This document shows positions 844-62,550 of a stretch of DNA of 64,000 bases, one piece after another (position 1 is the stretch's first letter; each line of letters begins with the position of its first letter). The DNA lies in IMG/VR virus record IMGVR_UViG_3300027710_000011, positions 62,001-126,000 of that record; one strand, written 5' to 3'. A program made the translations under genes and the position numbers. Under the pieces are notes generated by a model. It did not search any database and was not told the DNA's origin. It worked only from the letters and a program-made list of their open reading frames with translations.

Positions 844-864
844 AATTAAAAAAGAATAGACTGC

Positions 865-896
865 ATAAAGGGAGAGGCAAACGCCTCTCCCTTTAT
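865..896. terminator. Bidirectional intrinsic terminator hairpin
   Basis: ATAAAGGGAGAGG-caaacg-CCTCTCCCTTTAT inverted repeat. Confidence 0.8.
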
Positions 897-2755: not shown

Positions 2756-2828
2756 CTGACACCCCTTGTCAAGTATACGATAAGTTGTTGTGTAAAAAAT
2801 AAAAGGAGGGATTGCTCCCTCCTTTTAT

Positions 2829-3335
2829 TCAGTCAACCCGGCGCGAGTTGATCGCAAGTTCTTGCCAATTGTCACGAACACCAATCTGATATCCCGATGG
2901 GTAAGACATCGTTTTGTTGCGTTCCTCAGCCATCAAAACACTACGCGCATTGAGTAGTGCTTCGATGTAATCGTGACGCTGTGTGGTAGTCAGCGCGACT
3001 TCACGAGGATCTTTCATCCATGACAACTCGATAGGAAAATCATCGATCTTGACAAAGTCACGGTCGTAAATGCTGATCCAGCCAGTGACCGTGCACACCG
3101 TCATTTGCGGCATTGCAAAGCGTGGACGAGCGTACTGTGGTGTAGACGCCGACTCATACATCTTGTCCAACCTAGCTCCGCTCGCATCGATCATTCTCAA
3201 CACCGCCTTCACAGCCACATCAGCGGCACGGTTGGCGTGGTTGAACTTCGCGTTCTGCAGCGAGTTATGCACAGCGTTCTTGCAGGCTGAGACAAAGCCC
3301 CACCAGTCTTTCGACGTATCGATTTTTTCAGTCAT
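2829..3335 (-). CDS. Hypothetical protein
   Basis: ORF; start set at MTEKID, overlapping the upstream stop. Confidence 0.7.
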   Translation of the reverse strand: MTEKIDTSKDWWGFVSACKNAVHNSLQNAKFNHANRAADVAVKAVLRMIDASGARLDKMYESASTPQYARPRFAMPQMTVCTVTGWISIYDRDFVKIDDFPIELSWMKDPREVALTTTQRHDYIEALLNARSVLMAEERNKTMSYPSGYQIGVRDNWQELAINSRRVD

Positions 3336-12118: not shown

Positions 12119-15100
12119 ATGCCTTCAAATACAACAAAACCATACGGCGGGTTAAGTCGTGACCGACTGACTCAGCTGATCAATGACTTCAACAACACGA
12201 ATCGCGTTGAAGGCGTAGATTTCATCTACGGCGTGCCGGTAGCACACACAGGTCCAAATGGTGAGAACACAAAGATCACCCTGACGCCTTTGCCGGACAC
12301 GATTTACGACGGTCCTGTGGACGTGCATTATTCGCGTCTGCGACTGAACGTTCTGGAGTTCTTGCCAGAAGGTTTCATTCGCGCTGCGGTGATCAAAGAC
12401 TTTCCTTTCTGGATCCACTCAGTCTTGCCGGAGATCAATGCCGCGTTGGGTCTGAATCTGGATGCATCGGAAGTCGTCAACACGCACTACGAAGGTCCTC
12501 AATCAACGTACCGTTTGGAAATCGTTCCAAGCGCTTCTGTTGCTTGGAGGCCGAGCTTCTATGATTTTCACGCCGTTCTCGGTGTGGAGCTCACAGATTC
12601 GTTCTTCACTGACATCGCAGATGGTTTCATCTGGAGCGGTAACGCGCTTGAAGACGTATTGCCGCGCGATTATCTGGAAGGCTTCGTTGCAGAAACCACG
12701 GAACTGAGTGTCGTCATTACTGGCGAAGTTGCGAATGGTTTTGCTCCGCGCGTAACACAGCTGTCTGAAATCATCCCTGTCAATAAGCTGGACGGTTTCG
12801 CTGCTGCGCTGTACGAACTCGAACGCGCTATTCCGACTGACAAGTTGGACGGCTTTGTTTTGACACCCGGTAAGCTTGAAGACCTGATTGGTCCCAAGGC
12901 CCTGGGCTTCGTGGCAGAAACATCACCTCTGGCTTCCTTCATTCCTGATGTAGCCGACGGCTTCGTTTGGACATTGTCGAGCCTGGCTGACTTCTTCCCC
13001 AGTAACGTGATGGGTGGCTTTGAGTTGACGCCTGGCGTTATCTCTAGCTTCTTCCCTGATAAGCTGGACGGCTTTGCCGCGACAACGACATCTCTGCATA
13101 CGTTGATCAACGATGTGGCTGACGGTTTCGATCGCTTCAGTACCAACCTGGGTACGCTGATTGCCGACAAGGCAGACGGTTTTGACCCTGTGTTCTTCTC
13201 GATTCCTTCGGCCTTCAACTCAGACATCCTGGACGGCTTTGTTGTTGCCGAACGTGAGTTGGGTGAGTTCTACCCTAGTAATGTCCTGGACGGCTTTGCT
13301 AAGTCCGAGAGTAACTTCGCTGGATTCTTCCCTAGCGACGTGGTAGATGGTTTCGTGTACACGCCTGGTGACTTGGCTGCTTTCTTTGCCAATAAGGCAG
13401 ACGGCTTTATCTGGACTGAGCGCGAGCTGGGCGAACTGATCGCTGACACTGCTGATGGATTCATTCGTCCTGAAGTAGAGTTGTCGACGCTGATCTACAA
13501 GGATCAAGCAGAAGGCTTCGTACCTAACACCACTGAACTGAGTGAAGTGATTGTTCAAGACGTTGCTACGGGCTTTGTTCGTACCGACAATGAACTGTCC
13601 AACCTGTTCACTGATGTAGCATCCGGTTTTGCGTTGACACCGCGCGAATTGAGCGAGTTGTTTGTTGATCAAGCATCTGGCTTCATCGTTAGCGATACCA
13701 ACCTGAGTGAAATTCTGGCTGACGTACTGAACGGTTTCGTACGTACCCCGACCTTGCTCGAACAAGTGATTTCTGACGTTGCCACTGGCTTCGATGCAAT
13801 CACTTACACACTGGAAGAGAAATTCAATTCAGACATCCTGAACGGTTTCGTTGAAACATTCAGTGACTTGGAACGTCTGATCGATGATTTCGCCAACGGT
13901 TTCGCTTATACGCCAATGCCACTTGGACAGATGTTCGGTGACATCGGTTTGGGCTTCGACATCGTTCCGACAAATCTGTCTGAACTGATTGGCGATGTCG
14001 CTACTGGTTTTGAAGTTCAAGATTCCACGATCGGGACGTTCTTCCAAGACGTCGCTGATGGCTTTGTCCTGACAGAAAACACACTGTCGGCAGTATTTGA
14101 AGACCAAGCCCTCGGGTTTGTTCCACAAACAACTGGTTTGACTGAAGTCATTCCTGGCCATGTGATGGGAGGTTTCTCGCCTTCGACTACAGAGCTGGCT
14201 GAGCTGATCGTTACTGATGTGGCTGACGGTTTCATTCCGCGCACAACAGCACTGGACGACTTGATTGCTAACGTCGCTTCTGGCTTCACGTTGACGGAGG
14301 GTGACCTCCAAGACTTGATTGCTACAGACGTGATGGATGGCTTCACGCCTGAGACCACTGAATTGTCCGTTCTGTTTGACGACGCTGCCAACGGCTTTGT
14401 TTACACAGAAGGCGACATTGGTCAGTTGATCACTGATACAGCAGATGGTTTTGTTTGGACAGCCTCTGACATCGCTGGATTCTTTAGCGATAGCGCAGAT
14501 GGTTTCGTTCTGACCGAAGGTAATCTGGCATCTCTGTTCGTGGACGCTGCCAACGGCTTCTCACGGACTGAATCCAGCCTGACTGTCTTCATCTCCGACC
14601 TCGCTGACGGTTTCACACCCGTTGTCGTGGCACTTTCGGACTTGATCGCAGATAAGGCAGATGGCTTTGCACCTTTCGAACCTGACCTGAATTCGTTGAT
14701 TGCTGACAAAGCTGATGGATTCGTACTGACACCTGGAGAGGTTGAAAACCTGTTCAGCGATGTAATGGACGGCTTCGTGCCTGAAACTACATTGATCGAT
14801 ACGCTGTTCGTTACTGATGTAGCACGCGGCTTCACAGCAGAGACATCTGCTCTAGGTACTTTCCTGCAAGACACAGCTGACGGTTTCGTTTGGACACCTA
14901 CCGATATTGATAGCAAGTTTGTATTCGATGTCGTTGAAGGTTTTGTCTGGACTGAATCCTCGCTGGACAGTTTCATCACTGCTGATGTACTCGATGGCTT
15001 TGTTGCAAGCGTAACTCCGCTTAGCGACATGGTGACCGCTGACGTGTTGGATGGGTTCATTGCTCAGACAACAGCTTTGTCAGAATTGATCAGTAACGTG

Positions 15101-16396
15101 GCGACGGGCTTTAGCCCTGAATCTACACCACTGAGCACTCTGATCACAGCAGACGTAGCGACGGGCTTCATTGTTAGCGAAACGGCTCTCAGCGAGATTA
15201 TCGTTGGTGAGACCGCTAACGGGTTCTCTGCACAGACTACAGCGCTCTCAGCGTTGATTACGGACGTCGCAGACGGCTTTGTGCGTGGTGAAAGTGAACT
15301 GACTAGCTTCATTGCCGACAAGGCAGATGGCTTCGTCTTTACACCTGGTCAGCTGGAAGTGCTGATTGGTAACGTTGCAACCGGTTTCGTACCGGAAACA
15401 ACTGACCTGTCTGCAATGATCGGTGACGTTGCAACCGGCTTCGTCTTTACGCCTGGTCTGATCAGTGATCTGTTTGTTGAGATTGCTGATGGCTTTGCTC
15501 CTGGTACTAGCGACATCGCTACGTTCTTTGCAGATGTTGCTGACGGCTTTGCTGTCGGCACAACGGTTCTGTCGACACTCATCGCTGATAAGGCCGATGG
15601 TTTCGTGGCGGCCGCAACTGATCTGTCAAGCTTGGTCGCAAACGTTGCTGACGGTTTCGTCTACACCGAGAACGACCTGACGAACGTGATCGCTGACAAG
15701 GCAGACGGGTTTGTTGCTGAAACAACAGACATTAATGGCTTGTTCGCTAGCAATGTGTTGGATGGCTTCGATAGCGTTCACACCACGATTGCCACAATGA
15801 TCTCTGACGTCGCTTCTGGCTTCGTCTGGAGTGAACGTGCTCTTAGCGAGCTGATTGTCCCTGATGTCCTGGACGGCTTCGACACTGGCGAGCAAACGCT
15901 CAATAGCGTGATTGCTGACAAGGTTGATGGCTTCCTGGCCACACCTGATGCAGACGGTCAATTGACTAACGCACTCTTCGTATTGCGTCCTGCAGATACA
16001 CAGTGGGCTGACGGTACCGTTATCGATGGTCGTATTGTTGAGAACATGCTTGTTCCAACCAGTCAAGATACGTGGGAAACTTTGCCCGCAACTTGGTCTG
16101 AATGGAATACGTGGCTGAGCAATCCGAACCCGATTGTCGAGTACGAAGAAGTAATTGACCTGGGTCAAGTCCGCACTGTTCGCTTGCGTGTTGATGCTGC
16201 TATCAATACAGCAACGACGGAAGGATGGGAAGCTAGGTACGTTACCAGCCTTGACGGAGTTGATTGGGGCAATGAAACATCGTGGCGTGATTTCCCAGGC
16301 AATAACGTAACAACGCGTTACGTGAAGGTCAAATGGGCCGCTCTCGGTACCTTCGCTACATTGTTGTCGCCAATGCTGACTGTTTACGAAAATTAA
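12119..16396 (+). CDS. Large virion structural / fibre-like protein with ~19-aa acidic tandem repeats
   Basis: 1425 aa; N-terminal domain with G..dvhY.Rl motif typical of phiKZ-like virion proteins; roughly 55-60 L..LI.D.A.GF repeats; distinct C-terminal domain. Confidence 0.75.
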   Translation: MPSNTTKPYGGLSRDRLTQLINDFNNTNRVEGVDFIYGVPVAHTGPNGENTKITLTPLPDTIYDGPVDVHYSRLRLNVLEFLPEGFIRAAVIKDFPFWIHSVLPEINAALGLNLDASEVVNTHYEGPQSTYRLEIVPSASVAWRPSFYDFHAVLGVELTDSFFTDIADGFIWSGNALEDVLPRDYLEGFVAETTELSVVITGEVANGFAPRVTQLSEIIPVNKLDGFAAALYELERAIPTDKLDGFVLTPGKLEDLIGPKALGFVAETSPLASFIPDVADGFVWTLSSLADFFPSNVMGGFELTPGVISSFFPDKLDGFAATTTSLHTLINDVADGFDRFSTNLGTLIADKADGFDPVFFSIPSAFNSDILDGFVVAERELGEFYPSNVLDGFAKSESNFAGFFPSDVVDGFVYTPGDLAAFFANKADGFIWTERELGELIADTADGFIRPEVELSTLIYKDQAEGFVPNTTELSEVIVQDVATGFVRTDNELSNLFTDVASGFALTPRELSELFVDQASGFIVSDTNLSEILADVLNGFVRTPTLLEQVISDVATGFDAITYTLEEKFNSDILNGFVETFSDLERLIDDFANGFAYTPMPLGQMFGDIGLGFDIVPTNLSELIGDVATGFEVQDSTIGTFFQDVADGFVLTENTLSAVFEDQALGFVPQTTGLTEVIPGHVMGGFSPSTTELAELIVTDVADGFIPRTTALDDLIANVASGFTLTEGDLQDLIATDVMDGFTPETTELSVLFDDAANGFVYTEGDIGQLITDTADGFVWTASDIAGFFSDSADGFVLTEGNLASLFVDAANGFSRTESSLTVFISDLADGFTPVVVALSDLIADKADGFAPFEPDLNSLIADKADGFVLTPGEVENLFSDVMDGFVPETTLIDTLFVTDVARGFTAETSALGTFLQDTADGFVWTPTDIDSKFVFDVVEGFVWTESSLDSFITADVLDGFVASVTPLSDMVTADVLDGFIAQTTALSELISNVATGFSPESTPLSTLITADVATGFIVSETALSEIIVGETANGFSAQTTALSALITDVADGFVRGESELTSFIADKADGFVFTPGQLEVLIGNVATGFVPETTDLSAMIGDVATGFVFTPGLISDLFVEIADGFAPGTSDIATFFADVADGFAVGTTVLSTLIADKADGFVAAATDLSSLVANVADGFVYTENDLTNVIADKADGFVAETTDINGLFASNVLDGFDSVHTTIATMISDVASGFVWSERALSELIVPDVLDGFDTGEQTLNSVIADKVDGFLATPDADGQLTNALFVLRPADTQWADGTVIDGRIVENMLVPTSQDTWETLPATWSEWNTWLSNPNPIVEYEEVIDLGQVRTVRLRVDAAINTATTEGWEARYVTSLDGVDWGNETSWRDFPGNNVTTRYVKVKWAALGTFATLLSPMLTVYEN
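12620..15940 (+). repeat. Degenerate ~57-nt (19-codon) coding tandem repeat
   Basis: GAC/GAT-GGN-TTY (D-G-F) recurs about every 57-60 nt. Confidence 0.85.
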
Positions 16397-17202: not shown

Positions 17203-17276
17203 GCCGTCTAAAGCAAAAAATAAAACACAGAATAAACAGAGGAGTCGAAACTCCTCTGTTTACTACATTCTCTTTC

Positions 17277-18687: not shown

Positions 18688-19158
18688 TTACTTGAAAGTA
18701 TTTCTGCGCCAACGACCGTTTATGTCGCTAACAGGGTTGATAGAGCCGCCCTCACCCGCCAGCTTCATTTGGTCGCCGATGAGTTCGCGCATCTTGAACT
18801 GCTTTTGCACGCGCAGTTCGATGAAGACTTCGCCACACACGTCGTCAATCTGTGCGTAGTAATCGTCTTCATCGAACTCTTCACCTTGCGTGTCGGTGAC
18901 TTCATTGACGGCCTTGCGGAAAGCAGCCGCAGCTTTGGCCATCTCTACTTTTTCACGTTCTCTGAAACCCACTGGAAAGGTTTCAGGATCAGGCTTGGCC
19001 ACCATGGCTTCTGCGCCGCAATGCGAGATCTTCTGGCGTTGAGCATCCGTCATGTAAGGGAAGTACTTTTTGAGCACCTCCTCAAACTGATCGATCACGA
19101 ACTGCTTGAAAATCAAGTACAGCTCTTGATTGGTTGGGATCTTTATAACGTTACTCAT
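18688..19158 (-). CDS. Hypothetical protein
   Basis: ORF with stop/start coupling. Confidence 0.7.
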   Translation of the reverse strand: MSNVIKIPTNQELYLIFKQFVIDQFEEVLKKYFPYMTDAQRQKISHCGAEAMVAKPDPETFPVGFREREKVEMAKAAAAFRKAVNEVTDTQGEEFDEDDYYAQIDDVCGEVFIELRVQKQFKMRELIGDQMKLAGEGGSINPVSDINGRWRRNTFK

Positions 19159-19436
19159 CAGCGCACCTGACCTGTTCGACGTGCCGTGATGTTACGCATC
19201 GCTTGACGATACGTCGGGAACAGCGATTCATGCAAGCGCCAGGGTGTGAACAAATGCATGATCCAGCCGCTTTTGCTCTTGATCTTTGCCTTGAGCAAGC
19301 CGTCTTTGATGATCGGCTTGCTCAAGAACAACAGAGGCTGAGGTTTTGACTTTTCTGTCAATTCACCGGCCGGACATGTCCACATAGTGGTGCCCGACTT
19401 GAGCTTCTTGAATTTCTTGGAATTAGGATTCATCAC
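19158..19436 (-). CDS. Hypothetical protein
   Basis: Basic 92-aa ORF with overlaps. Confidence 0.65.
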   Translation of the reverse strand: MMNPNSKKFKKLKSGTTMWTCPAGELTEKSKPQPLLFLSKPIIKDGLLKAKIKSKSGWIMHLFTPWRLHESLFPTYRQAMRNITARRTGQVR

Positions 19437-19684
19437 ATCTTCTCCGGAGTATGACCTTCAGGCCAAGGATCACTGCTGTCGCTTAAAACATCAATCATCC
19501 GGTTACGTACATCGTCACCACGGTCGCTGTGGAATTCGATAATGACATCGCCTTGAGTCGAATATTTCGTATGGAAATCTCGCAGTGCTTCAAGAGAAAG
19601 CGAAGCCTCCGAGACGATATCCCAATTCTCTTTCGTGTCTTTCATCAACACGTAAGGCACGTTGGAGGCTTCTTGCATTTTCAC
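19433..19684 (-). CDS. Hypothetical protein, paralogue of the C-terminus of 19681..20340
   Basis: Shared W.I......EF....R...IDVLS..D.WPEG..PEK. Confidence 0.7.
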   Translation of the reverse strand: MKMQEASNVPYVLMKDTKENWDIVSEASLSLEALRDFHTKYSTQGDVIIEFHSDRGDDVRNRMIDVLSDSSDPWPEGHTPEKM

Positions 19685-20340
19685 ACCTTCTTTTCCGGTT
19701 TATAGCCTTCAGGCCAAGCGTCGACTTGGGACAAGACATCAATCGCGGCATTGCGATCAGCAACAGCAGACGGACGGTTGAATTCGAGAAGCACTTGATC
19801 ATTACTCTCATCGGTGGCAACCGAAGTTGTCACGTGTTTATTGATGATGTCCCAGACTTCTTCGTTGTTCTTGACGACCAGGGACGGGATACCTGGGGTT
19901 TCTTGCAGATCCATTTTGTCTTCCTTCTTGGTTGGTTGTAGGATATTTTTCATCCGAGCGGAGTCAAAGAACTTGACCTCGTTTGAAATAAGTTTGGGGA
20001 GCAAGGCATTGAGCCGCATCTTTCCAAAATGGAAAAACATCTCGCTGCTAGTTGGTTCAGGACGATGAGTTATAATTATCTCGTCAGCAATGGTCTCCAG
20101 CCAACGTCGTGCACCGCCTGCAGGGCGAATAGTTCTGATCTCCACGCCCTTTGCCAATTCACGCAACTTGTTCACGTAGATGGGTTCACGCAAAAAGTCT
20201 GCTTTGTTGGGAATTTCCCAGATGTTGAGGTAATCGCGATATGCGTCTTTGGTATGGTTGGACGAAAGATCGACAGTTTGCTGATCCAGCTGGTTAAGCT
20301 TTTGCAACAATGCTGGGAAATCAATTTGGCTGTTATTCAC
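19681..20340 (-). CDS. Hypothetical protein
   Basis: 219-aa ORF. Confidence 0.7.
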   Translation of the reverse strand: MNNSQIDFPALLQKLNQLDQQTVDLSSNHTKDAYRDYLNIWEIPNKADFLREPIYVNKLRELAKGVEIRTIRPAGGARRWLETIADEIIITHRPEPTSSEMFFHFGKMRLNALLPKLISNEVKFFDSARMKNILQPTKKEDKMDLQETPGIPSLVVKNNEEVWDIINKHVTTSVATDESNDQVLLEFNRPSAVADRNAAIDVLSQVDAWPEGYKPEKKV

Positions 20341-20381
20341 GTTAGTTTCTCTTGGTTAGTGAAATAAAAAAGAATAAACAC

Positions 20382-21475
20382 CTCCTTAAGTACACGGGTT
20401 AGATGCACTTAAGGAGATATTCGAATTCGCTTAGTTCTTCGGTACCGGTGGCCATGAGACTTTCGTCTCGCTGAACTGTGCTTGCGCACAACAGCAACGG
20501 TTCGTACTCCTCTACAAACGAATTCGGTATCTCTGTTTTATTCACGTGGCATCCGTACAAGTTGACCAACGATAAATTGGGGGCGGTCAAGCGTGCACTA
20601 TGGAATCACCAGCGTTATTAAGTCCGTATCTGGATCTTGGTCTGCCGCAACCGGCGTCGAATTGTTTTTGGAAGCTTTTTGGCGGGAGGATTGCAATACA
20701 GTAAGCTAATTAACTCACGTTGTAGACAAGCCCATCCATTTCTGGATGCAAGCAAGTCTAAGCTCAGCGCCGCAACGTGGCCACTGTATCCATGAGGGTG
20801 TTTTAAGAACCTGACTCGATATAATCCGTAGCATTATCCGATCGCATAGATGCTAACGTAGCCTCGGTTTCTTTAATCACATGCGCTCACCCCACCGGGT
20901 ACCTTCGATGCACAGTAGGCGCCGTACAGGCTGCGTCGGGAACTCGGCAAGGGCGGCCACAGCCCACAGTCCCGACTATCGCTGTAGAACCCTTGAACTT
21001 CAGTCGCCTGCAAACACTCGCTTTTGCGCAGCGTGCATTAAAACTGAAGCCAAGGCCCAAGACCTCCGATCTTAGAACGTCAATACGTACTGCCAGTATT
21101 GCGCGTGCTATGGCTTGATCGAACCGGAGGTCCTTTTTGTTTATCAACCCGATGAGGTACCGGGTCAAACGAATGCGTATCCCCACAGAACCTCCCTTCT
21201 GAGTTGACTTTTATTGACAGCAGATTTGGTTTGAATCTACTGCTTGGTTGTTGGTGGGCATGAGTAAACGAGGGGCCTTCTCGAATCCGATGTGGTCTGA
21301 ACCGTCACGGTATTGAAGCCTGGCAGCAAGTTACTCTTCCCGTTTTTTATTCTGTTGGTCAGGGCAACTAACCAACGTAATTGACTCTTTCTAGAGTTTT
21401 GTGTTGGCCGCAACCGGCCTTCGAATTGTGGGTTGGAAAGGGAGTAATGACCATGGTTGATCGTCACTACTCCCA
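20382..21475 (-). ncRNA. Putative large structured non-coding RNA (family not identified)
   Basis: More than 12 helices with G-U wobbles favouring the minus strand, three GNRA tetraloops, nested long-range pairings, a terminal 14-bp hairpin plus U-tract; no convincing ORF between 20340 and 21237. Confidence 0.6.
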
Positions 21476-21989
21476 ACAGCATTCGGATGCGCTCGTGCAG
21501 CACCATGCTGCGGGCTGAAAAGCGCTTCCAGCCTACGTTGCGTTGATGAATTCGCCTGGACTGCTCATGCGCTGCCGCATCATGATCGTTGTCCTGGCGC
21601 GCTTGCACTAATTCATCATTCTCGTATTCACAGACGTACCAAGGAGAGATGGGTTCTTCATTCTGAACCAACGCTTGTGCCAAGGCTTTTCCGAGTCGAA
21701 TGGCAATACTGTCATCCTCAGATAACAGCACTCTGAGAATATCGCGTTTTGCAGCAACTGATCTGGCATCCACCATGCGTTGAAACGTAGAGCCAGATTC
21801 TTGCTCACGAATAGCGTGTAGGAATTCTTCGCGCTTGCTGGCTTCTTGGTTAGCGACTTCGATCAGTTCACATCCGGCTTCTTGTACCAAGTGTCTGATC
21901 TTATCGATCAAAGCAGAATCAAGACCTGCCCCCACGATAAGGAGGCGTTTTGTTTCATCGCTGGAATTCACAACTACCTCCTTTCTCAT
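21237..21989 (-). CDS. Hypothetical protein whose 3' third overlaps the structured RNA
   Basis: RBS GAGG before start; first ~165 aa look protein-like, the tail overlaps hairpins. Confidence 0.6.
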   Translation of the reverse strand: MRKEVVVNSSDETKRLLIVGAGLDSALIDKIRHLVQEAGCELIEVANQEASKREEFLHAIREQESGSTFQRMVDARSVAAKRDILRVLLSEDDSIAIRLGKALAQALVQNEEPISPWYVCEYENDELVQARQDNDHDAAAHEQSRRIHQRNVGWKRFSARSMVLHERIRMLLGVVTINHGHYSLSNPQFEGRLRPTQNSRKSQLRWLVALTNRIKNGKSNLLPGFNTVTVQTTSDSRRPLVYSCPPTTKQ

Positions 21990-22902: not shown

Positions 22903-24939
22903 ATGGCTAACATTGTTACACGAGCCCTTGGCTTCGTGGATGTGTCTGAAGACGAGAAATACATCACAATCGGCGGTGTGAAGGCTGAGAATATCGGTAA
23001 GGACATTCTCCGCATGTGGGGAACGAATCGCATTGAGCAACACATGTTCAATGAGATTGGTGGACGCGTTATCAGGTTCCCAAAGTTCTTTGGTCCTGAG
23101 GTGCATTACATCCTCAGCAAGATTTTGAACAACAAGAAGGTCGTTACAAGTCGTGGAAGTATCAAGGACGCTTTGGCTCTCCTTGAACAAAACACTTGGA
23201 TGAAACGCATCACGCAAGAGTACGACCCTATTATTGATTTGGATGCCGTCAAGCTGTTCAATAAGACGCCGATGCCGCACCAGATTAATTTCTTCCAGAT
23301 GTATAGTCATCGTACGCAATCGTACGGACTGAACGGCTATCTCCTGTCCGCTGGCGCTGGCACTGGTAAGACACTGATGGCACTCATCTTGTCCGAAATG
23401 CTGCATGCTGACTACAAGGTGATTGTCTGTCCAAAGAATGCTGCTTACCGAGTGTGGGTAACTTCTTTGGCTGAAGAATACAAAGATCCTCGCAAGGCTT
23501 GGGTAATCGCAGACGGTAAGGCTTACGAAGGTCAGAAGTACATTGTCTGTCATTACGAAGGTTTGGAAAAGCTCAAGGCCATTGCTGGCCGCCTTTCCGG
23601 ACGCGTGATCATCCCGCTTGATGAGTCTCACAATTTGAACAGTGACGATTCCTTGCGGACTCAATACTTCATCGACATCTGTCGCTCCATCCGTAACGTA
23701 CACGTGCTGTGGATGTCGGGTACACCAGTGAAAGCTCTTGGGTACGAAAGCATTCCACTGTTGCGCTCCATTGATCCGCTCTTCACCGATGAAGTGGAAG
23801 CGCGGTTCAAGAAGATCTATGGGCGTGATGCCACAAAGGCTTTGGACATCTTGCGTCAACGTATCGGCATGATTTCTTTCCACGTGGAAAGCTCTGCGGT
23901 TGTGACAAATGAGACGACGACTCACAATCGGATGATCAGTATCCCGAACGGTAAGATATACACGTTGGATGCTGTGCGTACCGAGATGCAGAAGTTCATT
24001 GAAACTCGTCTGAAATTCTACTTGGGCGAGAGCAAGAGTTTCAAGAAAACTTATGAGCGAGCGCTTGATATCTACGAAGACACGATCAAGGATAATGGCC
24101 TGCTGTCTAAAGACAGTGAAGAACGTCGTGCATTCAAGACGTACAAGCGCTACATCGAGCTGATCTCTTCCGGCTTTGATCCAATGAGTATGGCTAAGGA
24201 AGCCAAGTATTGCAATCATTTCGAGAAGAACATCATTGCTCCTACTTTGCCAAAAGACTTGAAGAAGGCTTTCATGAGCGCCAAGTCTGTGGTGAAGTAT
24301 CCGCAGCTTAAGGTACTTGGTGAAGCACTCGGTGGTGTTCTGAGCAAGAAGCGTGTTCAATGTCACTTGGACATGATTCCGCATATGGGACTAGAAAAGA
24401 TCATCAACGCGGCTTCGAAGAAGACCATCATCTTCTCGAGTTACGTTGAGGTGGTGGATGCAATCACGAAGTACCTGAAGGGTAAGGGTTTCAATCCCAT
24501 TGCCGTACACGCAAGTAGTGGTCAGGAACTCTCAGCATCCGTTAACCAGTTCTTCAAAGATCCGAATCTCAATCCGTTGGTGGCGACTTTCCAATCGCTA
24601 TCGACAGCAGTTCCGATTATCTGCGCGAACTGTACTGTGTTCACGAACATGCCGTTCCGTGAATACGAGATTACACAAGCTCGTGCTCGCACGAATCGTT
24701 TGGGTCAAGATACTGCTGTTGAGTACTACAACACGTACCTTGACACTGGTAAAGAGCCCAACGTCTCCACCCGCTCACGTGACATCCTGGAATGGTCGCG
24801 CCAACAAGTTGCAGCCATCCTTGGCCAAGACTATGGCGGCACTATTACAGCTGAAATGGTGAACTCGATGGAGAGTTTGACAGAGGACTACACTCCTTTC
24901 GAGATCAGTCTCGCTATGGAGGAATACGCAGACTTTTAA
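22903..24939 (+). CDS. SNF2-like (SF2) helicase
   Basis: PMPHQ, SAGAGTGKT, VCPK, IPLDESH, MSGTP, IFSSY and QARARTNRLGQ motifs. Confidence 0.88.
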   Translation: MANIVTRALGFVDVSEDEKYITIGGVKAENIGKDILRMWGTNRIEQHMFNEIGGRVIRFPKFFGPEVHYILSKILNNKKVVTSRGSIKDALALLEQNTWMKRITQEYDPIIDLDAVKLFNKTPMPHQINFFQMYSHRTQSYGLNGYLLSAGAGTGKTLMALILSEMLHADYKVIVCPKNAAYRVWVTSLAEEYKDPRKAWVIADGKAYEGQKYIVCHYEGLEKLKAIAGRLSGRVIIPLDESHNLNSDDSLRTQYFIDICRSIRNVHVLWMSGTPVKALGYESIPLLRSIDPLFTDEVEARFKKIYGRDATKALDILRQRIGMISFHVESSAVVTNETTTHNRMISIPNGKIYTLDAVRTEMQKFIETRLKFYLGESKSFKKTYERALDIYEDTIKDNGLLSKDSEERRAFKTYKRYIELISSGFDPMSMAKEAKYCNHFEKNIIAPTLPKDLKKAFMSAKSVVKYPQLKVLGEALGGVLSKKRVQCHLDMIPHMGLEKIINAASKKTIIFSSYVEVVDAITKYLKGKGFNPIAVHASSGQELSASVNQFFKDPNLNPLVATFQSLSTAVPIICANCTVFTNMPFREYEITQARARTNRLGQDTAVEYYNTYLDTGKEPNVSTRSRDILEWSRQQVAAILGQDYGGTITAEMVNSMESLTEDYTPFEISLAMEEYADF

Positions 24940-33800: not shown

Positions 33801-33942
33801 GGTTGTATCTCCTTTTAGTTAAAATTTAAGAAAGTCTCAATTCACGCTCGTAATAGGTAATAGAAGTGAAACGTATTACGAGTATAAACAAAAACAAAGA
33901 ATAAAAGGAGGGAGTAATTCCCTCCTTTTATAACGTCTTATC

Positions 33943-45315: not shown

Positions 45316-45889
45316 TTGTTTTCTCCAATTAAAAGATGATTATTAAGTTCGATACTACCTTAACTCATGCTAGGTATATGTGTCTGAAATATTCTAGGAT
45401 ACAGTTTTTGACCAAAAAAAGACATCATAATCAGGGGAGCCAAAGCTCCCCTGATTTTAAGACTATACGGATGAACCACTCCGTATTTGACGACGATCAT
45501 GCCACCAATAGCAAGGGATCGCTACTGCGAACATGATGCAGAACGTCAGCACACTTAGTACTGCAATTGCGAACGCGCCCAATACCACCAGTGTCGTAGA
45601 TAACACTTTAGTGGCGAGCTTGTTTAACTTTTTCACCTTATGTCTCCCTTAAGGCTAGATTGTTTTACAGGAGGATTTATCCTCCATACGCATTACTGCC
45701 TTACTTCTCGCCGGTAGCTTCTTTGATCAGTTGCTGGAATTGTTCCAGCTTCTTTTTATTTTGCATCCTGAGCCGCAGCGTTTGTTTGTGATCGCGTAAT
45801 GAAACCACAACAATTGCGAAGATAGGAGCCAACGCAATTGTCCAGACGAGCAACGCCATTAAGTCAGACATACCCTCCCCCTATTTGTC

Positions 45890-48927: not shown

Positions 48928-49178
48928 TATCGCTTCCTTTCTTCATGCGGTTGCTCATGTTCTTGTCCTTCATCAGTTCGGTATAGAGTTTCAAAGAGAA
49001 ACCCAACACGATCAAATTACCGACGACAAGCAAGACGTTGACGATGGTAAGTCCGATGTTTAGAGTGGTTATTTCCACATCGCCTCCTACAGTTAGTTTA
49101 CTTATACACCAGGTCAGTGATATGTAATCAAAAAAGAATAGACTGCATAAAGAGAGGAGCATTGGCTCCTCTCTTTAT

Positions 49179-50132: not shown

Positions 50133-50207
50133 TGGTGCCGGATATCTGGATCGAACAGATGACCTACCGCTTACAAGGCGGTTGCTCTACCACTGAGCTA
50201 AGCCGGC
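50133..50207 (-). tRNA. tRNA-Thr(UGU)
   Basis: Full cloverleaf GCCGGCTTAGCTCAGTGGTAGAGC...CTTGTAA...TTCGATC...GGCACCA with encoded CCA. Confidence 0.95.
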
Positions 50208-52258: not shown

Positions 52259-52315
52259 AACACCTCCAAAAATAACGGCATAAAGAGAGGTTTTACCCTC
52301 TCTTTATGCACTCAA

Positions 52316-52447: not shown

Positions 52448-52554
52448 TGGCGCTACTTGGAATCGAACCAAGCACCTGCCTTTCTGTCGTAGCTAACGCA
52501 GCAGCGTAATCGCAGGGACAGATCGGTTGCTCTAGCCATCTGAGCTATAGCGCC
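52448..52554 (-). ncRNA. tRNA-like RNA with expanded anticodon domain
   Basis: Perfect acceptor, D and T arms; 33 extra nt in the anticodon region. Confidence 0.75.
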
Positions 52555-61788: not shown

Positions 61789-62550
61789 CTATTTGAGAAG
61801 CTTTGTTTGCTTTTGAATTTCCAGAGCGAACTTTCTGAACTCGTCTTCGTTACCAAAGACAATGTATTCGCCACGGGTCACATGATGTTGAACACCGGCA
61901 TCTGTCATGGCTTGCACGATCTTGTCCATCGGCAATTCCTTCACAGGAATATCCGTTGGAATGAGAACGCTGGTCTCGATTTTTTGCAGAGCATCTTTAC
62001 TGAGATTGTGGTCGCGATACGCACTGCGGATACCGCCACCATCTATTTGATCCCAGCAGACCGGTGTGACTTGGTTGTCTGGCACCGTCACGACTGTCAG
62101 ACCTGGAGATACTTCATTCACGGTGGTGGCTGCCATGAGTTCGTTATTTCCAACAAGCTCTTCATACTTGCTGGAAGTAATGTGGAGCCTGTTGGACTTC
62201 ACGCCGGAACGAACTGCTGCTAGCACAATGCGTTTTTCCCAACGCTCCGTACTCATCGCCGGCAAAGATGCCCATTTGTAGTAAATTTCTAACGGAATGT
62301 GCATCCGAAACGGAATCTGAGTCGAAGCTTTGTCAAAGCCAGAAAGCGGCTCATTGGTGGCCATTACATTACCGTTACCGCCTCTTATGTACTCGCTCAA
62401 GACGTAAGTCAAGCCATACGCTTCAAAGCTCTCGCAACGAAGTTCGCCATACTGCTGTAACAATTCAGCGTCACTAAGTTTGAGAACTTCGGCAATGATC
62501 TTGTCCACCTCGACGAAATTGGCGGCGTCGTAATAATCAATCTTACTCAT
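61789..62550 (-). CDS. Hypothetical protein
   Basis: 253-aa ORF, coupled overlap. Confidence 0.7.
   Translation of the reverse strand: MSKIDYYDAANFVEVDKIIAEVLKLSDAELLQQYGELRCESFEAYGLTYVLSEYIRGGNGNVMATNEPLSGFDKASTQIPFRMHIPLEIYYKWASLPAMSTERWEKRIVLAAVRSGVKSNRLHITSSKYEELVGNNELMAATTVNEVSPGLTVVTVPDNQVTPVCWDQIDGGGIRSAYRDHNLSKDALQKIETSVLIPTDIPVKELPMDKIVQAMTDAGVQHHVTRGEYIVFGNEDEFRKFALEIQKQTKLLK

Follow-up and report, generated by a model that had tools for sequence, protein, structure and literature searches.

A conserved, highly folded RNA of about 1.1 kb with two paralogous modules and a small reading frame in uncultivated phiKZ-like jumbo phages

Why does a gene-dense jumbo phage genome keep a stretch of about 1.1 kb in which no long gene can be read? 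We addressed this question in a 64,000-nucleotide stretch (the window) covering positions 62,001 to 126,000 of the IMG/VR record IMGVR_UViG_3300027710_000011. The region between 20382 and 21475 includes the largest ORF-poor gap of the window, 896 nt between long ORFs, and all three minus-strand frames are broken by stops. An earlier note, made from the letters alone, proposed that it is a large ornate non-coding RNA, possibly of a new class, read from the minus strand. The observation on which the note rested holds, as every helix that it listed is found in the sequence. On the minus strand we read the hairpins GAGAC-GAAA-GUCUC (20456-20469), UGUGC-GCAA-GCACA (20477-20490) and CAUCCA-GAAA-UGGAUG (20733-20748), the perfect 7-bp helices 20696-20702/20783-20789, 20716-20722/20773-20779, 20935-20941/20970-20976 and 20998-21004/21043-21049, a 9-bp helix 21061-21069/21124-21132, the elements GGGAGG (21191-21196) and CCUCCC (20684-20689), and a terminator hairpin with a U tract (20376-20422). 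The note's boundaries are close to right, the 5' end being a covarying hairpin at 21441-21475 and the 3' end the terminator. Its interpretation is only partly supported: a large, conserved phage RNA is confirmed, whereas the RNA is not simply non-coding and one long-range pairing that the note proposed finds no support.

The fold is more than chance. The minimum free energy of the minus strand is -315.9 kcal/mol compared to -280.4 +/- 8.2 kcal/mol for dinucleotide shuffles (z -4.35), whereas the plus strand gives z -0.01. To learn whether the fold is conserved we collected relatives. Searches of deposited phages were of little help: blastn of the region against 50,697 phage records found no match, and tblastn of the three flanking ORFs found nothing useful. 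Single-protein scans of IMG/VR with the flanking proteins and the helicase returned only the source contig, the 219-aa downstream protein has no relatives among 5.8 billion proteins, and a second assembly of the same phage is identical. Motif scans returned only the source contig in IMG/VR, 61 loci in JGI metagenomes, all chance except the source, and two GC-rich loci of about 15 bits in GTDB genomes, also judged chance; a relaxed motif gave 33 loci in IMG/VR, with no model hit better than 13.5 bits. In contrast, metagenomic relatives whose helicase is 72-90% identical yielded nine distinct homologues (given here as L-numbers; one of these, L088, is a cut 1.7-kb contig). All nine lie directly after the same upstream gene, gene C, and all that extend upstream also carry the rest of a three-gene cassette (genes A-C). 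The contig of a further relative, P0009 (67% helicase identity), shows the same ~1.1-kb gap.

The consensus structure of the homologues has an energy of -274 kcal/mol compared to -158 +/- 7.6 kcal/mol for column shuffles (z -15.2), and 90 of 216 pairs covary, compared to a mean of 32 and a maximum of 51 in the shuffles. As the family is small, with nine full homologues plus two short ones, and comes from one clade, these statistics rest on few independent lineages, and the column-shuffle control ignores phylogeny. The reverse-complement alignment folds nearly as well (-254 kcal/mol, 95 covarying pairs), hence the strand assignment rests on the single-sequence z-scores, on the excess of G-U pairs over A-C mismatches in the consensus helices (165 to 71), on the terminator and on the reading frame described below. 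Of the helices in the earlier note, covariation supports 21061-21070/21123-21132 (6 covarying pairs), 20935-20944/20968-20976 (3), 20991-21000/21046-21055 (2), 20696-20701/20784-20789 (4), the terminator, and the GAAA hairpin at 20456-20469, which is GUUGC-GAAA-GCAAC in L012. Helix 20716-20722/20773-20779 is specific to the window and L008. The pairing of GGGAGG with CCUCCC some 500 nt away is not supported: CCUCCC is not conserved (it is GCACCC in L015 and L016), the consensus fold pairs that stretch with 20882-20895 instead, and GGGAGG is the conserved Shine-Dalgarno of an internal ORF.

Could the region be a decayed protein gene, or chance structure in non-functional spacer? The stops in all three minus frames across most of the region would be in line with this, and yet the conservation data contradict it. 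The region is 90% identical between the window and L008, whose neighbouring gene is saturated at synonymous sites, invariant blocks of 12-20 nt persist across nine lineages, covariation is strong, and ORF pieces on both strands match no Pfam or PHROG family. The homologues are not assembly duplicates of one genome, as their identity ranges from 68 to 90%. In the distant relatives blastn matches to the window are confined to the helicase block (with a short piece of gene B in L015 and L016), the DUF7941 gene and short pieces of the RNA, chiefly its two modules.

The RNA (all features on the minus strand) begins with hairpin P1 (21441-21475), an inverted repeat starting about 8 nt after the last conserved codons of gene C (HERIR, 21483-21497). 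Its stem pairs covary (for example UA:5 AU:2 CG:1 and AU:3 GC:3), and in L015 gene C stops just before it. Module 1 (21319-21439) follows, holding the invariant ACAAUUCGAAG, hairpin P2 (GGCCG-GUUG-CGGCC, 21406-21419), CAAC, hairpin P3 (21384-21397), CAAUUA, hairpin P4 (21349-21381), the linker ACAGAAUAAAAAAC and the 5' strand of P5. Its alignment has 75% mean column identity. P5 (21256-21341) is a long stem (GGG-GAGUAAC.../...GUUCACUC-CCC) with a variable tip, in which helix 21327-21336/21262-21272 has 0 broken cells of 64 and 2 covarying pairs. Hairpin P6 (21217-21243) is optional, being absent in L013, L015 and L016; in the window it contains the stop codon of the extended gene C ORF. In the window the frame of gene C reads 83 codons into module 1, and ribosomes on that frame would melt the module, which speaks against the reading proposed below.

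A covariance model of module 1 scores 135.7 bits on module 1 and also hits 20609-20675 (21.8 bits, E 7e-4), revealing a paralogous module 2 (20535-20689). Module 2 runs CCCGCCAAAAAG, ACAAUUCGAC, hairpin GCCG-GUUG-CGGC (20644-20655), a hairpin at 20621-20637, UUAAUAA and then GAAUAAAACAGAG, and it shares with module 1 a 23-nt repeat (21407-21429 and 20644-20665). The model finds module 2 in all nine homologues, with up to 40.9 bits and E 4e-9 in L011, and it finds one module in shorter, ORF-less gaps of ~410 nt in two more distant relatives, L082 and L083. On 18 module copies 89% of cells are paired compared to 70% in shuffles, 16 of 23 pairs change on both sides compared to 9.0 +/- 1.6 (0 of 500 shuffles reach this), and the covariation score is 0.327 compared to 0.02-0.07 for slid controls, although the module alignment was fitted to the model.

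Two near-identical 23-nt repeats lying 763 bp apart raise the possibility of a replication element, in which the repeats would be protein-binding iterons at an origin or the structured transcript would prime replication in the manner of ColE1 RNA II. The neighbouring SNF2 helicase and ribonucleotide reductase genes would fit such a role, and cumulative GC skew shows a shallow local minimum at 20-22 kb. We consider this unlikely. The repeats are hairpins whose stems covary (GC, AU, CG and GU pair types), which is not expected of double-stranded binding sites, the fold is strand-specific, the skew signal is weak and confounded by the switch in gene orientation, and no AT-rich unwinding element or initiator gene was identified.

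Between the modules the RNA, unexpectedly, also carries an AAGGAGG-type Shine-Dalgarno (GGGAGG in the window) and a small ORF. A stem-loop (21143-21208) encloses the translation start, so that the Shine-Dalgarno (21191-21196) and the GUG start (21184-21186) are paired with 21154-21164; the outer helix 21199-21208/21143-21152 has 4 covarying pairs, whereas the inner helix varies on one side only. Pairing of the Shine-Dalgarno with the 3' UCUCCUU motif was considered, but one apparent compensation in L015 needs a register shift and the motif is a genome-wide regulatory element, and therefore we do not claim it. The ORF (20887-21186; 99 codons here, 93-127 in relatives) ends in the motif AACTAPTV..PVG and overlaps the covarying helices 21061-21132, 20991-21055 and 20935-20976. 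The Shine-Dalgarno, a 4-7-nt spacer, the GUG and the open frame are present in 9 of 9 homologues, frames +1 and +2 hold 2-7 stops each, indels keep the frame, and L088 keeps the AACTAP residues of the AACTAPTV motif through three synonymous changes. The predicted protein is basic and looks unlike known proteins: it matches no Pfam or PHROG family and shows no endonuclease, maturase or reverse-transcriptase similarity, only family members are found among 1.84 billion representatives, its Atlas recognition is 1322 with no lead from that search, and AlphaFold gives pLDDT 48 and pTM 0.21, a model too poor to search with. pN/pS is 0.4-0.85, in a frame where pS is itself depressed by RNA constraint. 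Between the window and L008 pS is 0.11 in the ORF compared to 0.70 in neighbouring gene B; synonymous sites are thus about six times more conserved, indicating that selection acts on the RNA itself. Block CAGCCUGUACGGCGCC (20921-20936) is conserved at all three codon positions in 8 of 9 homologues, and in the consensus fold it is a possible 10-bp partner of the module 2 hairpin, but without covariation.

Is the element then essentially an mRNA, with the small protein as the functional product and unusually long cis-regulatory untranslated regions controlling its translation or stability, resembling fold-back inhibition in which the ribosome-binding site is masked until the RNA is processed or bound? 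The conserved frame and start, the synonymous changes in L088 and the occluded Shine-Dalgarno make this possible, and it is the strongest alternative, although we hold it to be the less likely one. The untranslated parts are more conserved than the coding part (75% column identity in module 1, whereas the ORF proteins are 22-51% identical between lineages), synonymous sites are strongly constrained, the related module occurs without any ORF in L082 and L083, about 800 nt of conserved structure for a ~100-codon frame has no known precedent in gene-dense phage genomes, and the protein scores as not protein-like.

The central 3' domain (20682-20895) holds helices 20882-20895/20682-20695, 20866-20880/20798-20811 (GUGAAUAAAGA with UCUUAAAGCAC), 20852-20858/20827-20832 and 20784-20789/20696-20701, with 3, 4, 3 and 4 covarying pairs, respectively, as well as the GAAA hairpin 20733-20748. 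Downstream of module 2, a 3' sub-domain (20421-20527) is closed by a helix at about 20516-20527/20421-20432, in which 10 of 12 pairs covary, and carries the GNRA-capped hairpins 20477-20490 and 20456-20469. An 11-nt GAAA-receptor motif is not present consistently. The unit ends in an intrinsic terminator (20366-20422), a 20-pair hairpin followed by AUUCUUUUUU (with the stem taken as 20376-20422, the tract that follows is ATTCTTTTTT). The terminator is conserved in L008 and L012, with a compensatory G-C to A-U change in L012, and synteny with relatives ends at about 20355.

The RNA matches no described family. Scanning the whole window against Rfam 15 at gathering thresholds, including GOLLD, ROOL, OLE, HEARO, raiA, tmRNA, RNase P, 6S, group I and group II introns and self-cleaving ribozymes, gave only two tRNA hits elsewhere. 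Scanning 20200-21700 at E up to 10 gave only an 18-nt fragment of a group II domain 5 model on the GAAA hairpin (20453-20470; model positions 17-34 of 49, 17.7 bits against a gathering score of 61, E 0.89). As phiKZ-like phages carry group I introns (PMC11620839) and direct repeats flank a segment that contains the ORF, we asked whether the element might be a self-splicing intron or the remnant of another mobile element with a decayed homing or maturase gene. This is very unlikely. No group I intron model, with its conserved P3-P8 core and guanosine-binding P7, was hit in the same scan at E up to 10, gene C ends at its conserved HERIR motif before the RNA, the downstream gene differs in almost every relative so that no host gene is split, the ORF has no endonuclease, maturase or reverse-transcriptase similarity, and the element sits at one fixed locus with no extra copies in the 64-kb window.

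Among known systems, GOLLD and ROOL (bioRxiv 10.1101/2024.12.08.627333) are likewise large ornate RNAs, often in phages and prophages, of 0.6-1 kb or more, with many covarying helices, GNRA loops, A-rich linkers and no known biochemical function. They form RNA-only multimers, which the earlier note describes as multimeric cages for some of them and which for the present RNA would be an analogy only. The present RNA shows no sequence or structure match to either in the Rfam 15 scans, is not next to the window's tRNA genes, has an internal module duplication and carries a conserved, translated-looking ORF. Dual-function RNAs such as RNAIII/hld, SgrS/SgrT and SR1/SR1P are also structured RNAs under RNA-level selection that contain a small frame with its own ribosome-binding site, but they are 200-500 nt, encode peptides of 26-43 aa and act by base-pairing with target mRNAs. 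In hok-type mRNAs and ssRNA-phage genomes, as here, the Shine-Dalgarno and start codon are sequestered in conserved structure, so that translation is expected to depend on refolding or ribosome transit; here, however, we identified no antisense partner, no toxin-like hydrophobic peptide and no replicase, the ORF being about 100 codons and basic rather than a membrane peptide of 30-60 aa as in type I toxin-antitoxin systems. The phi29 pRNA, a phage RNA that works as a protein-bound scaffold, likewise has repeated interaction surfaces that suggest assembly with protein or with itself, but it is about 170 nt, lies at a genome end, has no ORF and has no sequence or structure relation to this RNA; a role in packaging here is pure speculation. 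Finally, we found an unannotated ~800-nt region in the Xanthomonas jumbo phages LucasX and RTH11, which are phiKZ-like, that is ORF-poor, terminator-ended, strand-specifically stable (z -6.65 and -3.72) and located on the gene block divergent from the same helicase. As only two sequences are available this structured region is unproven; it has no Shine-Dalgarno or ORF, and blastn, nhmmer and the module model detected no similarity to the RNA of the window. The synteny of LucasX and Eowyn around the helicase is not conserved.

Based on our data we propose, with a probability of roughly 0.6, that 20366-21475 encodes a new dual-function structured RNA of a small clade of uncultivated phiKZ-like jumbo phages, probably a protein-binding scaffold or RNP. 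Each of its two ~120-nt modules has an invariant AAUUCGA-GCCG-GUUG-CGGC hairpin, two further hairpins and A-rich linkers (AAUUA, GAAUAAA), and together they flank the central multi-helix domain with its frame. The structure, its conservation, the duplication, the open frame and RNA-level selection come directly from the analysis. In the absence of expression data, transcription as one discrete unit and its 5' end, translation of the frame, the binding partner and the function itself are inferred. In this view the RNA is probably transcribed with the three-gene cassette, which starts at the promoter region divergent from the SNF2 helicase gene, and is itself the main functional product. The two modules would act as paired docking sites for a protein, a phage or host factor or possibly the small basic protein that the RNA encodes, although no binding partner has been identified. 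Translation of the embedded frame would be gated by the structure and would in turn remodel it. A more far-reaching and doubtful possibility is that the RNA and its protein form a self-contained ribonucleoprotein, in which the twin GUUG-hairpin modules would dock the protein or drive RNA-RNA multimerisation as in GOLLD and ROOL. Such a particle would act in trans during infection by nucleus-forming jumbo phages, for example as a decoy for a host RNA-binding defence or ribosomal factor or as a scaffold at the phage nucleus, and would be a DNA-phage-encoded RNP in which one transcript is both structural component and messenger.

Large ornate RNAs are rare and their functions remain mostly unsolved. 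Two recent reviews of jumbo and nucleus-forming phages mention only that phiKZ expresses non-coding RNAs, and nothing like this element. The novelty is at the level of the family and has good comparative support, 'new' meaning that the RNA has no relative among described families; the kind of object, a large structured phage RNA of unknown function, has precedents. Its internal logic, twin modules plus an embedded, structure-gated reading frame, is unusual, a simpler one-module relative suggests how it was built, and it is a clean ~1.1-kb target for cryo-EM or chemical probing. In phages that separate transcription from translation inside a protein shell, an RNA can fold completely before it meets a ribosome, and such an RNA could act in either compartment, which makes its localisation and partners a direct experimental question.

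The window belongs to the 276.8-kb IMG/VR contig IMGVR_UViG_3300027710_000011, and its SNF2 helicase (22903-24939, plus strand) is 39-46% identical to the helicases of phiKZ-like jumbo phages, among them Xanthomonas LucasX and RTH11, Klebsiella Eowyn and Pseudomonas PA1C; that the phage is nucleus-forming is inferred from these relatives only. Many relatives of this helicase (proteins P0011, P0033, P0038, P0046, P0050, P0068, P0101 and P0111) are 900-1080 aa long and carry a LAGLIDADG (PF14528) domain, suggesting inteins, and in phiKZ-type Pseudomonas phages the helicase match is split into two pieces about 950 nt apart (phage records H9-H15), which suggests an intron or insertion, whereas the copy of the window is uninterrupted.

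Between the minus-strand ORFs 19681-20340 and 21237-21989 lies the largest ORF-poor gap of the window, 896 nt, in which all three minus frames are broken by stops. A codon-usage score showed that the upstream ORF loses its coding signal near 21440-21500, well before its stop at 21237. The observation of the earlier note, which listed hairpins and helices in this region, held, as every one of them is present as written, and a 20-pair hairpin followed by a U tract closes the region at 20376-20422. The minus strand of 20370-21300 folds to -315.9 kcal/mol, against -280.4 +/- 8.2 kcal/mol for dinucleotide shuffles (z -4.35), whereas the plus strand gives z -0.01; as only 20 shuffles were run, the z-score is rough. 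The interpretation of the note, a large functional non-coding RNA of the phage and possibly a new class, is partly supported, since the RNA matches no Rfam 15 family but also holds a conserved reading frame.

Nucleotide and flanking-protein searches in deposited phages, IMG/VR and JGI metagenomes returned only the source contig, and it was the conserved helicase that led to relatives. Among 5.8 billion proteins the helicase has relatives at 90, 86, 74, 74, 73, 72 and 67% identity, and every one of their contigs has a 0.9-1.1-kb stretch with no called gene, or only a ~100-codon one, at the same place, namely after a cassette of three small genes (A of 68-94 aa, B of 163-175 aa and C of 138-250 aa) transcribed divergently from the helicase. 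Two further homologues came from searches with the internal ORF, giving nine distinct sequences, all metagenomic and from one clade: the window and the loci designated L008, L011, L012, L013, L015, L016, L084 and L088. The six compared directly by blastn or nhmmer are 68-90% identical to the window where alignable. In addition, the Xanthomonas jumbo phages LucasX and RTH11 share an unannotated region of about 800-850 nt (locus L005, 754-1560 on the minus strand of the locus, MW825358.1 174170-174976; locus L007, 2931-3778, OQ790161.1 98422-99269) with strand-specific fold stability (z -6.65 and -3.72), patchy block conservation and a terminator. This region has no Rfam hit, no shared ORF and no similarity to the window RNA, and is a second candidate large structured RNA in phiKZ-like phages.

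The alignment of the homologues shows invariant blocks of 12-20 nt separated by variable stretches: CGAAG.CCGGTTGCGG.CAAC; ACAGAATAAA followed by GGGAAGAGTAACTTGC; CCTCGTTCACTC; CAGAAAGGAGGT; CAGCCTGTACGGCGCC; GTGAATAAAGAA; TAAAGCACCC; and CCCGCCAAAAAG, followed by a second AATTCGA.GCCGGTTGCGG. As the same nucleotides of the 5' domain are read in different frames, with stops at different places, in different phages, this conservation is not protein-level. A consensus fold of an L-INS-i alignment of eight sequences gives -274 kcal/mol, against -158 +/- 7.6 kcal/mol for 30 class-preserving column shuffles (z -15.2), and of its 216 pairs 90 change on both sides, whereas the shuffles, which do not take phylogeny into account, give a mean of 32 and a maximum of 51. 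The reverse-complement alignment folds almost as well (-254 kcal/mol), and therefore the strand assignment rests on the single-sequence z-scores, the excess of G-U pairs over A-C mismatches in the helices (165 against 71), the terminator and the ORF. The region is not a decayed gene, as it is conserved, it covaries, and the ORF pieces on both strands match no family.

A 23-nt direct repeat (21407-21429 and 20644-20665) turned out to mark an internal duplication. A covariance model of the 5' module (21319-21439; three hairpins plus conserved linkers; 121 positions, 23 pairs) finds a second copy in the 3' domain of every homologue, with E-values of 4e-9 in L011, 7e-4 in the window and 6e-8 in L088. 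On the 18 module copies 89% of cells pair, against 70% in shuffles, and 16 of 23 pairs change on both sides, against 9.0 +/- 1.6 in shuffles, none of 500 of which reaches the observed value; the covariation score is 0.327, against 0.02-0.07 when the partners are slid by 1-3 columns. It should be considered that this alignment was fitted to the model, which favours it somewhat. The GCCG-GUUG-CGGC hairpin covaries at its outer pairs (GC, GU, AU and CG types), and its loop is GUUG nearly everywhere, the exceptions being GUCG in both copies of L084 and in one copy of L013. Because the repeats are covarying hairpins and the fold is strand-specific, a DNA-level role such as an origin with iterons is unlikely, although an RNA-primed origin cannot be excluded.

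The model also finds one copy in the ~410-nt gene-free gaps of two more distant relatives, L082 (7395-7817) and L083 (7401-7810; minus strand of each locus), whose helicases are 55-56% identical, with an E-value of about 1e-3 (2e-6 when the gap of L082 alone is searched). These gaps are found at a corresponding spot, yet five genes from the helicase rather than three, they have no Shine-Dalgarno or ORF, and the two sequences show compensatory changes between them (16 of 83 predicted pairs). It is conceivable that this single-module element resembles the ancestral form of the 1.1-kb RNA.

Unexpectedly, the invariant block CAGAAAGGAGGU is a strong Shine-Dalgarno, which in all nine homologues is followed after 4-7 nt by GUG and an open frame of 93-127 codons (20887-21186 in the window). 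The frame has no stop in any homologue, while the other two frames carry 2-7 stops each over the same span. Indels in the variable middle keep the frame, and in three lineages a net length change that is not a multiple of three is matched by a 1-nt shift of the start codon. Furthermore, L088 keeps the AACTAP residues of the C-terminal AACTAPTV motif through three synonymous changes. We conclude that the frame is kept open by selection and is therefore probably translated. The protein itself is odd, as it matches no Pfam or PHROG family, its only relatives among 1.84 billion representatives are members of this family, its language-model recognition score is low, its AlphaFold model is poor (pLDDT 48, pTM 0.21) and its pN/pS is 0.4-0.85. 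The Shine-Dalgarno and start codon sit inside a stem-loop (21143-21208) whose outer helix has four covarying pairs.

Between the window and L008 the neighbouring gene B is saturated at synonymous sites (pS 0.70), whereas the RNA region is 90% identical and pS in the small ORF is 0.11. The same direction holds for two other pairs, pS being 0.40 in the ORF and 0.70 in gene B for L011 against L012, and 0.60 and 0.73 for L012 against L013. In the distant relatives, blastn matches to the window are confined to the helicase block (with a short piece of gene B in L015 and L016), the DUF7941 gene and short pieces of the RNA, chiefly the two modules. Next to a DUF7941 gene the window encodes a 1425-aa protein (12119-16396, plus strand), conserved in the relatives, that consists largely of tandem ~20-residue repeats (..DGFV.T...L..LI.D.A..), the long antisense ORFs on it being repeat artefacts. 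The block CAGCCUGUACGGCGCC is invariant at all three codon positions in eight of nine homologues. The primary constraint is therefore on the nucleotide sequence and structure, and the coding constraint lies on top of it. The main rival explanation is that this is an mRNA with elaborate regulatory untranslated regions, and yet it is weakened by three observations: the untranslated parts are better conserved than the coding part, synonymous sites are constrained, and a one-module version exists without the ORF.

The conserved part of gene C ends at the motif HERIR (21483-21497), and the stop position differs in each relative. In L015 the stop follows HERIR directly, a few nucleotides before the 5' hairpin P1, and in L088 it comes eight codons later, whereas in the window the frame happens to stay open for 83 more codons across P1 and module 1 (21237-21482, minus strand), so that the annotated C-terminal third of this ORF, called as 244-250 aa, is probably not a conserved protein part. 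As there is no room for a promoter between gene C and P1, we infer that the RNA is most simply the distal part of the A-B-C transcript or starts inside gene C, its 5' end and transcript boundaries being likewise inferred. Downstream of the terminator synteny ends: with the closest relative, L008, it breaks exactly there (18810-20354), almost every relative has different genes at this place, and the 3' end of the RNA borders a hypervariable gene cassette region. The 83-aa and 219-aa ORFs found there in the window (19433-19684 and 19681-20340, minus strand) share a similar C-terminal motif (DVLS..D.WPEG..PEK) and look like paralogous ORFan genes with no relatives in any database searched. The 3' motif CTCCYTWWATGC occurs 8 times in the window against 1.3 expected (863-874(-), 2819-2830(+), 20405-20416(-), 33899-33910(-), 45644-45655(+), 49145-49156(-), 52278-52289(-) and 52298-52309(+); also 17204-17215(+)). 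The sites checked lie between genes, some following a hairpin, and the motif is also found in relatives and, as CTCTTATGC, at predicted LucasX terminators. It is a genome-wide regulatory signal, probably a clade-wide terminator or promoter signal, and it is not a specific part of this RNA.

The RNA is not a member of any Rfam 15 family, as scans of the whole window at gathering thresholds and of the region at E up to 10 gave nothing for it apart from an 18-nt fragment resembling group II domain 5 at E 0.89, on a GAAA hairpin. Elsewhere in the window Rfam reports a tRNA match (40.7 bits) spanning 107 nt at 52448-52554 (minus strand), 2.2 kb from the tRNA-Thr at 50133-50207, which ARAGORN does not call and which could be a tRNA with an intron or long insertion, or a tRNA-like element. 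Nor is the 1.1-kb element an intron, since no gene is split and it has no endonuclease or maturase. In kind it is closest to GOLLD and ROOL, the large ornate phage-associated RNAs, and in logic to dual-function RNAs such as RNAIII and SgrS and to structure-gated messages such as hok or the ssRNA-phage genomes, yet it is a member of none of these, and the literature examined describes no such RNA in jumbo phages.

Taken together, our analysis shows a conserved, strand-specific multi-domain fold with duplicated modules, a masked ribosome-binding site, an open frame, purifying selection at the RNA level and an ORF-less relative with one module. We put a probability of about 0.9 on a functional structured RNA, and consider it likely that the RNA is also translated, whereas a mechanism as a scaffold or RNP specifically remains tentative. 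In the absence of expression data or a host, we infer from sequence alone that the RNA is the main product and that the twin modules, with their invariant loops and A-rich linkers, are paired docking surfaces for a protein or for RNA-RNA assembly. In this view, translation of the embedded frame would be gated by the fold, and would in turn unfold three covarying helices and the invariant block.
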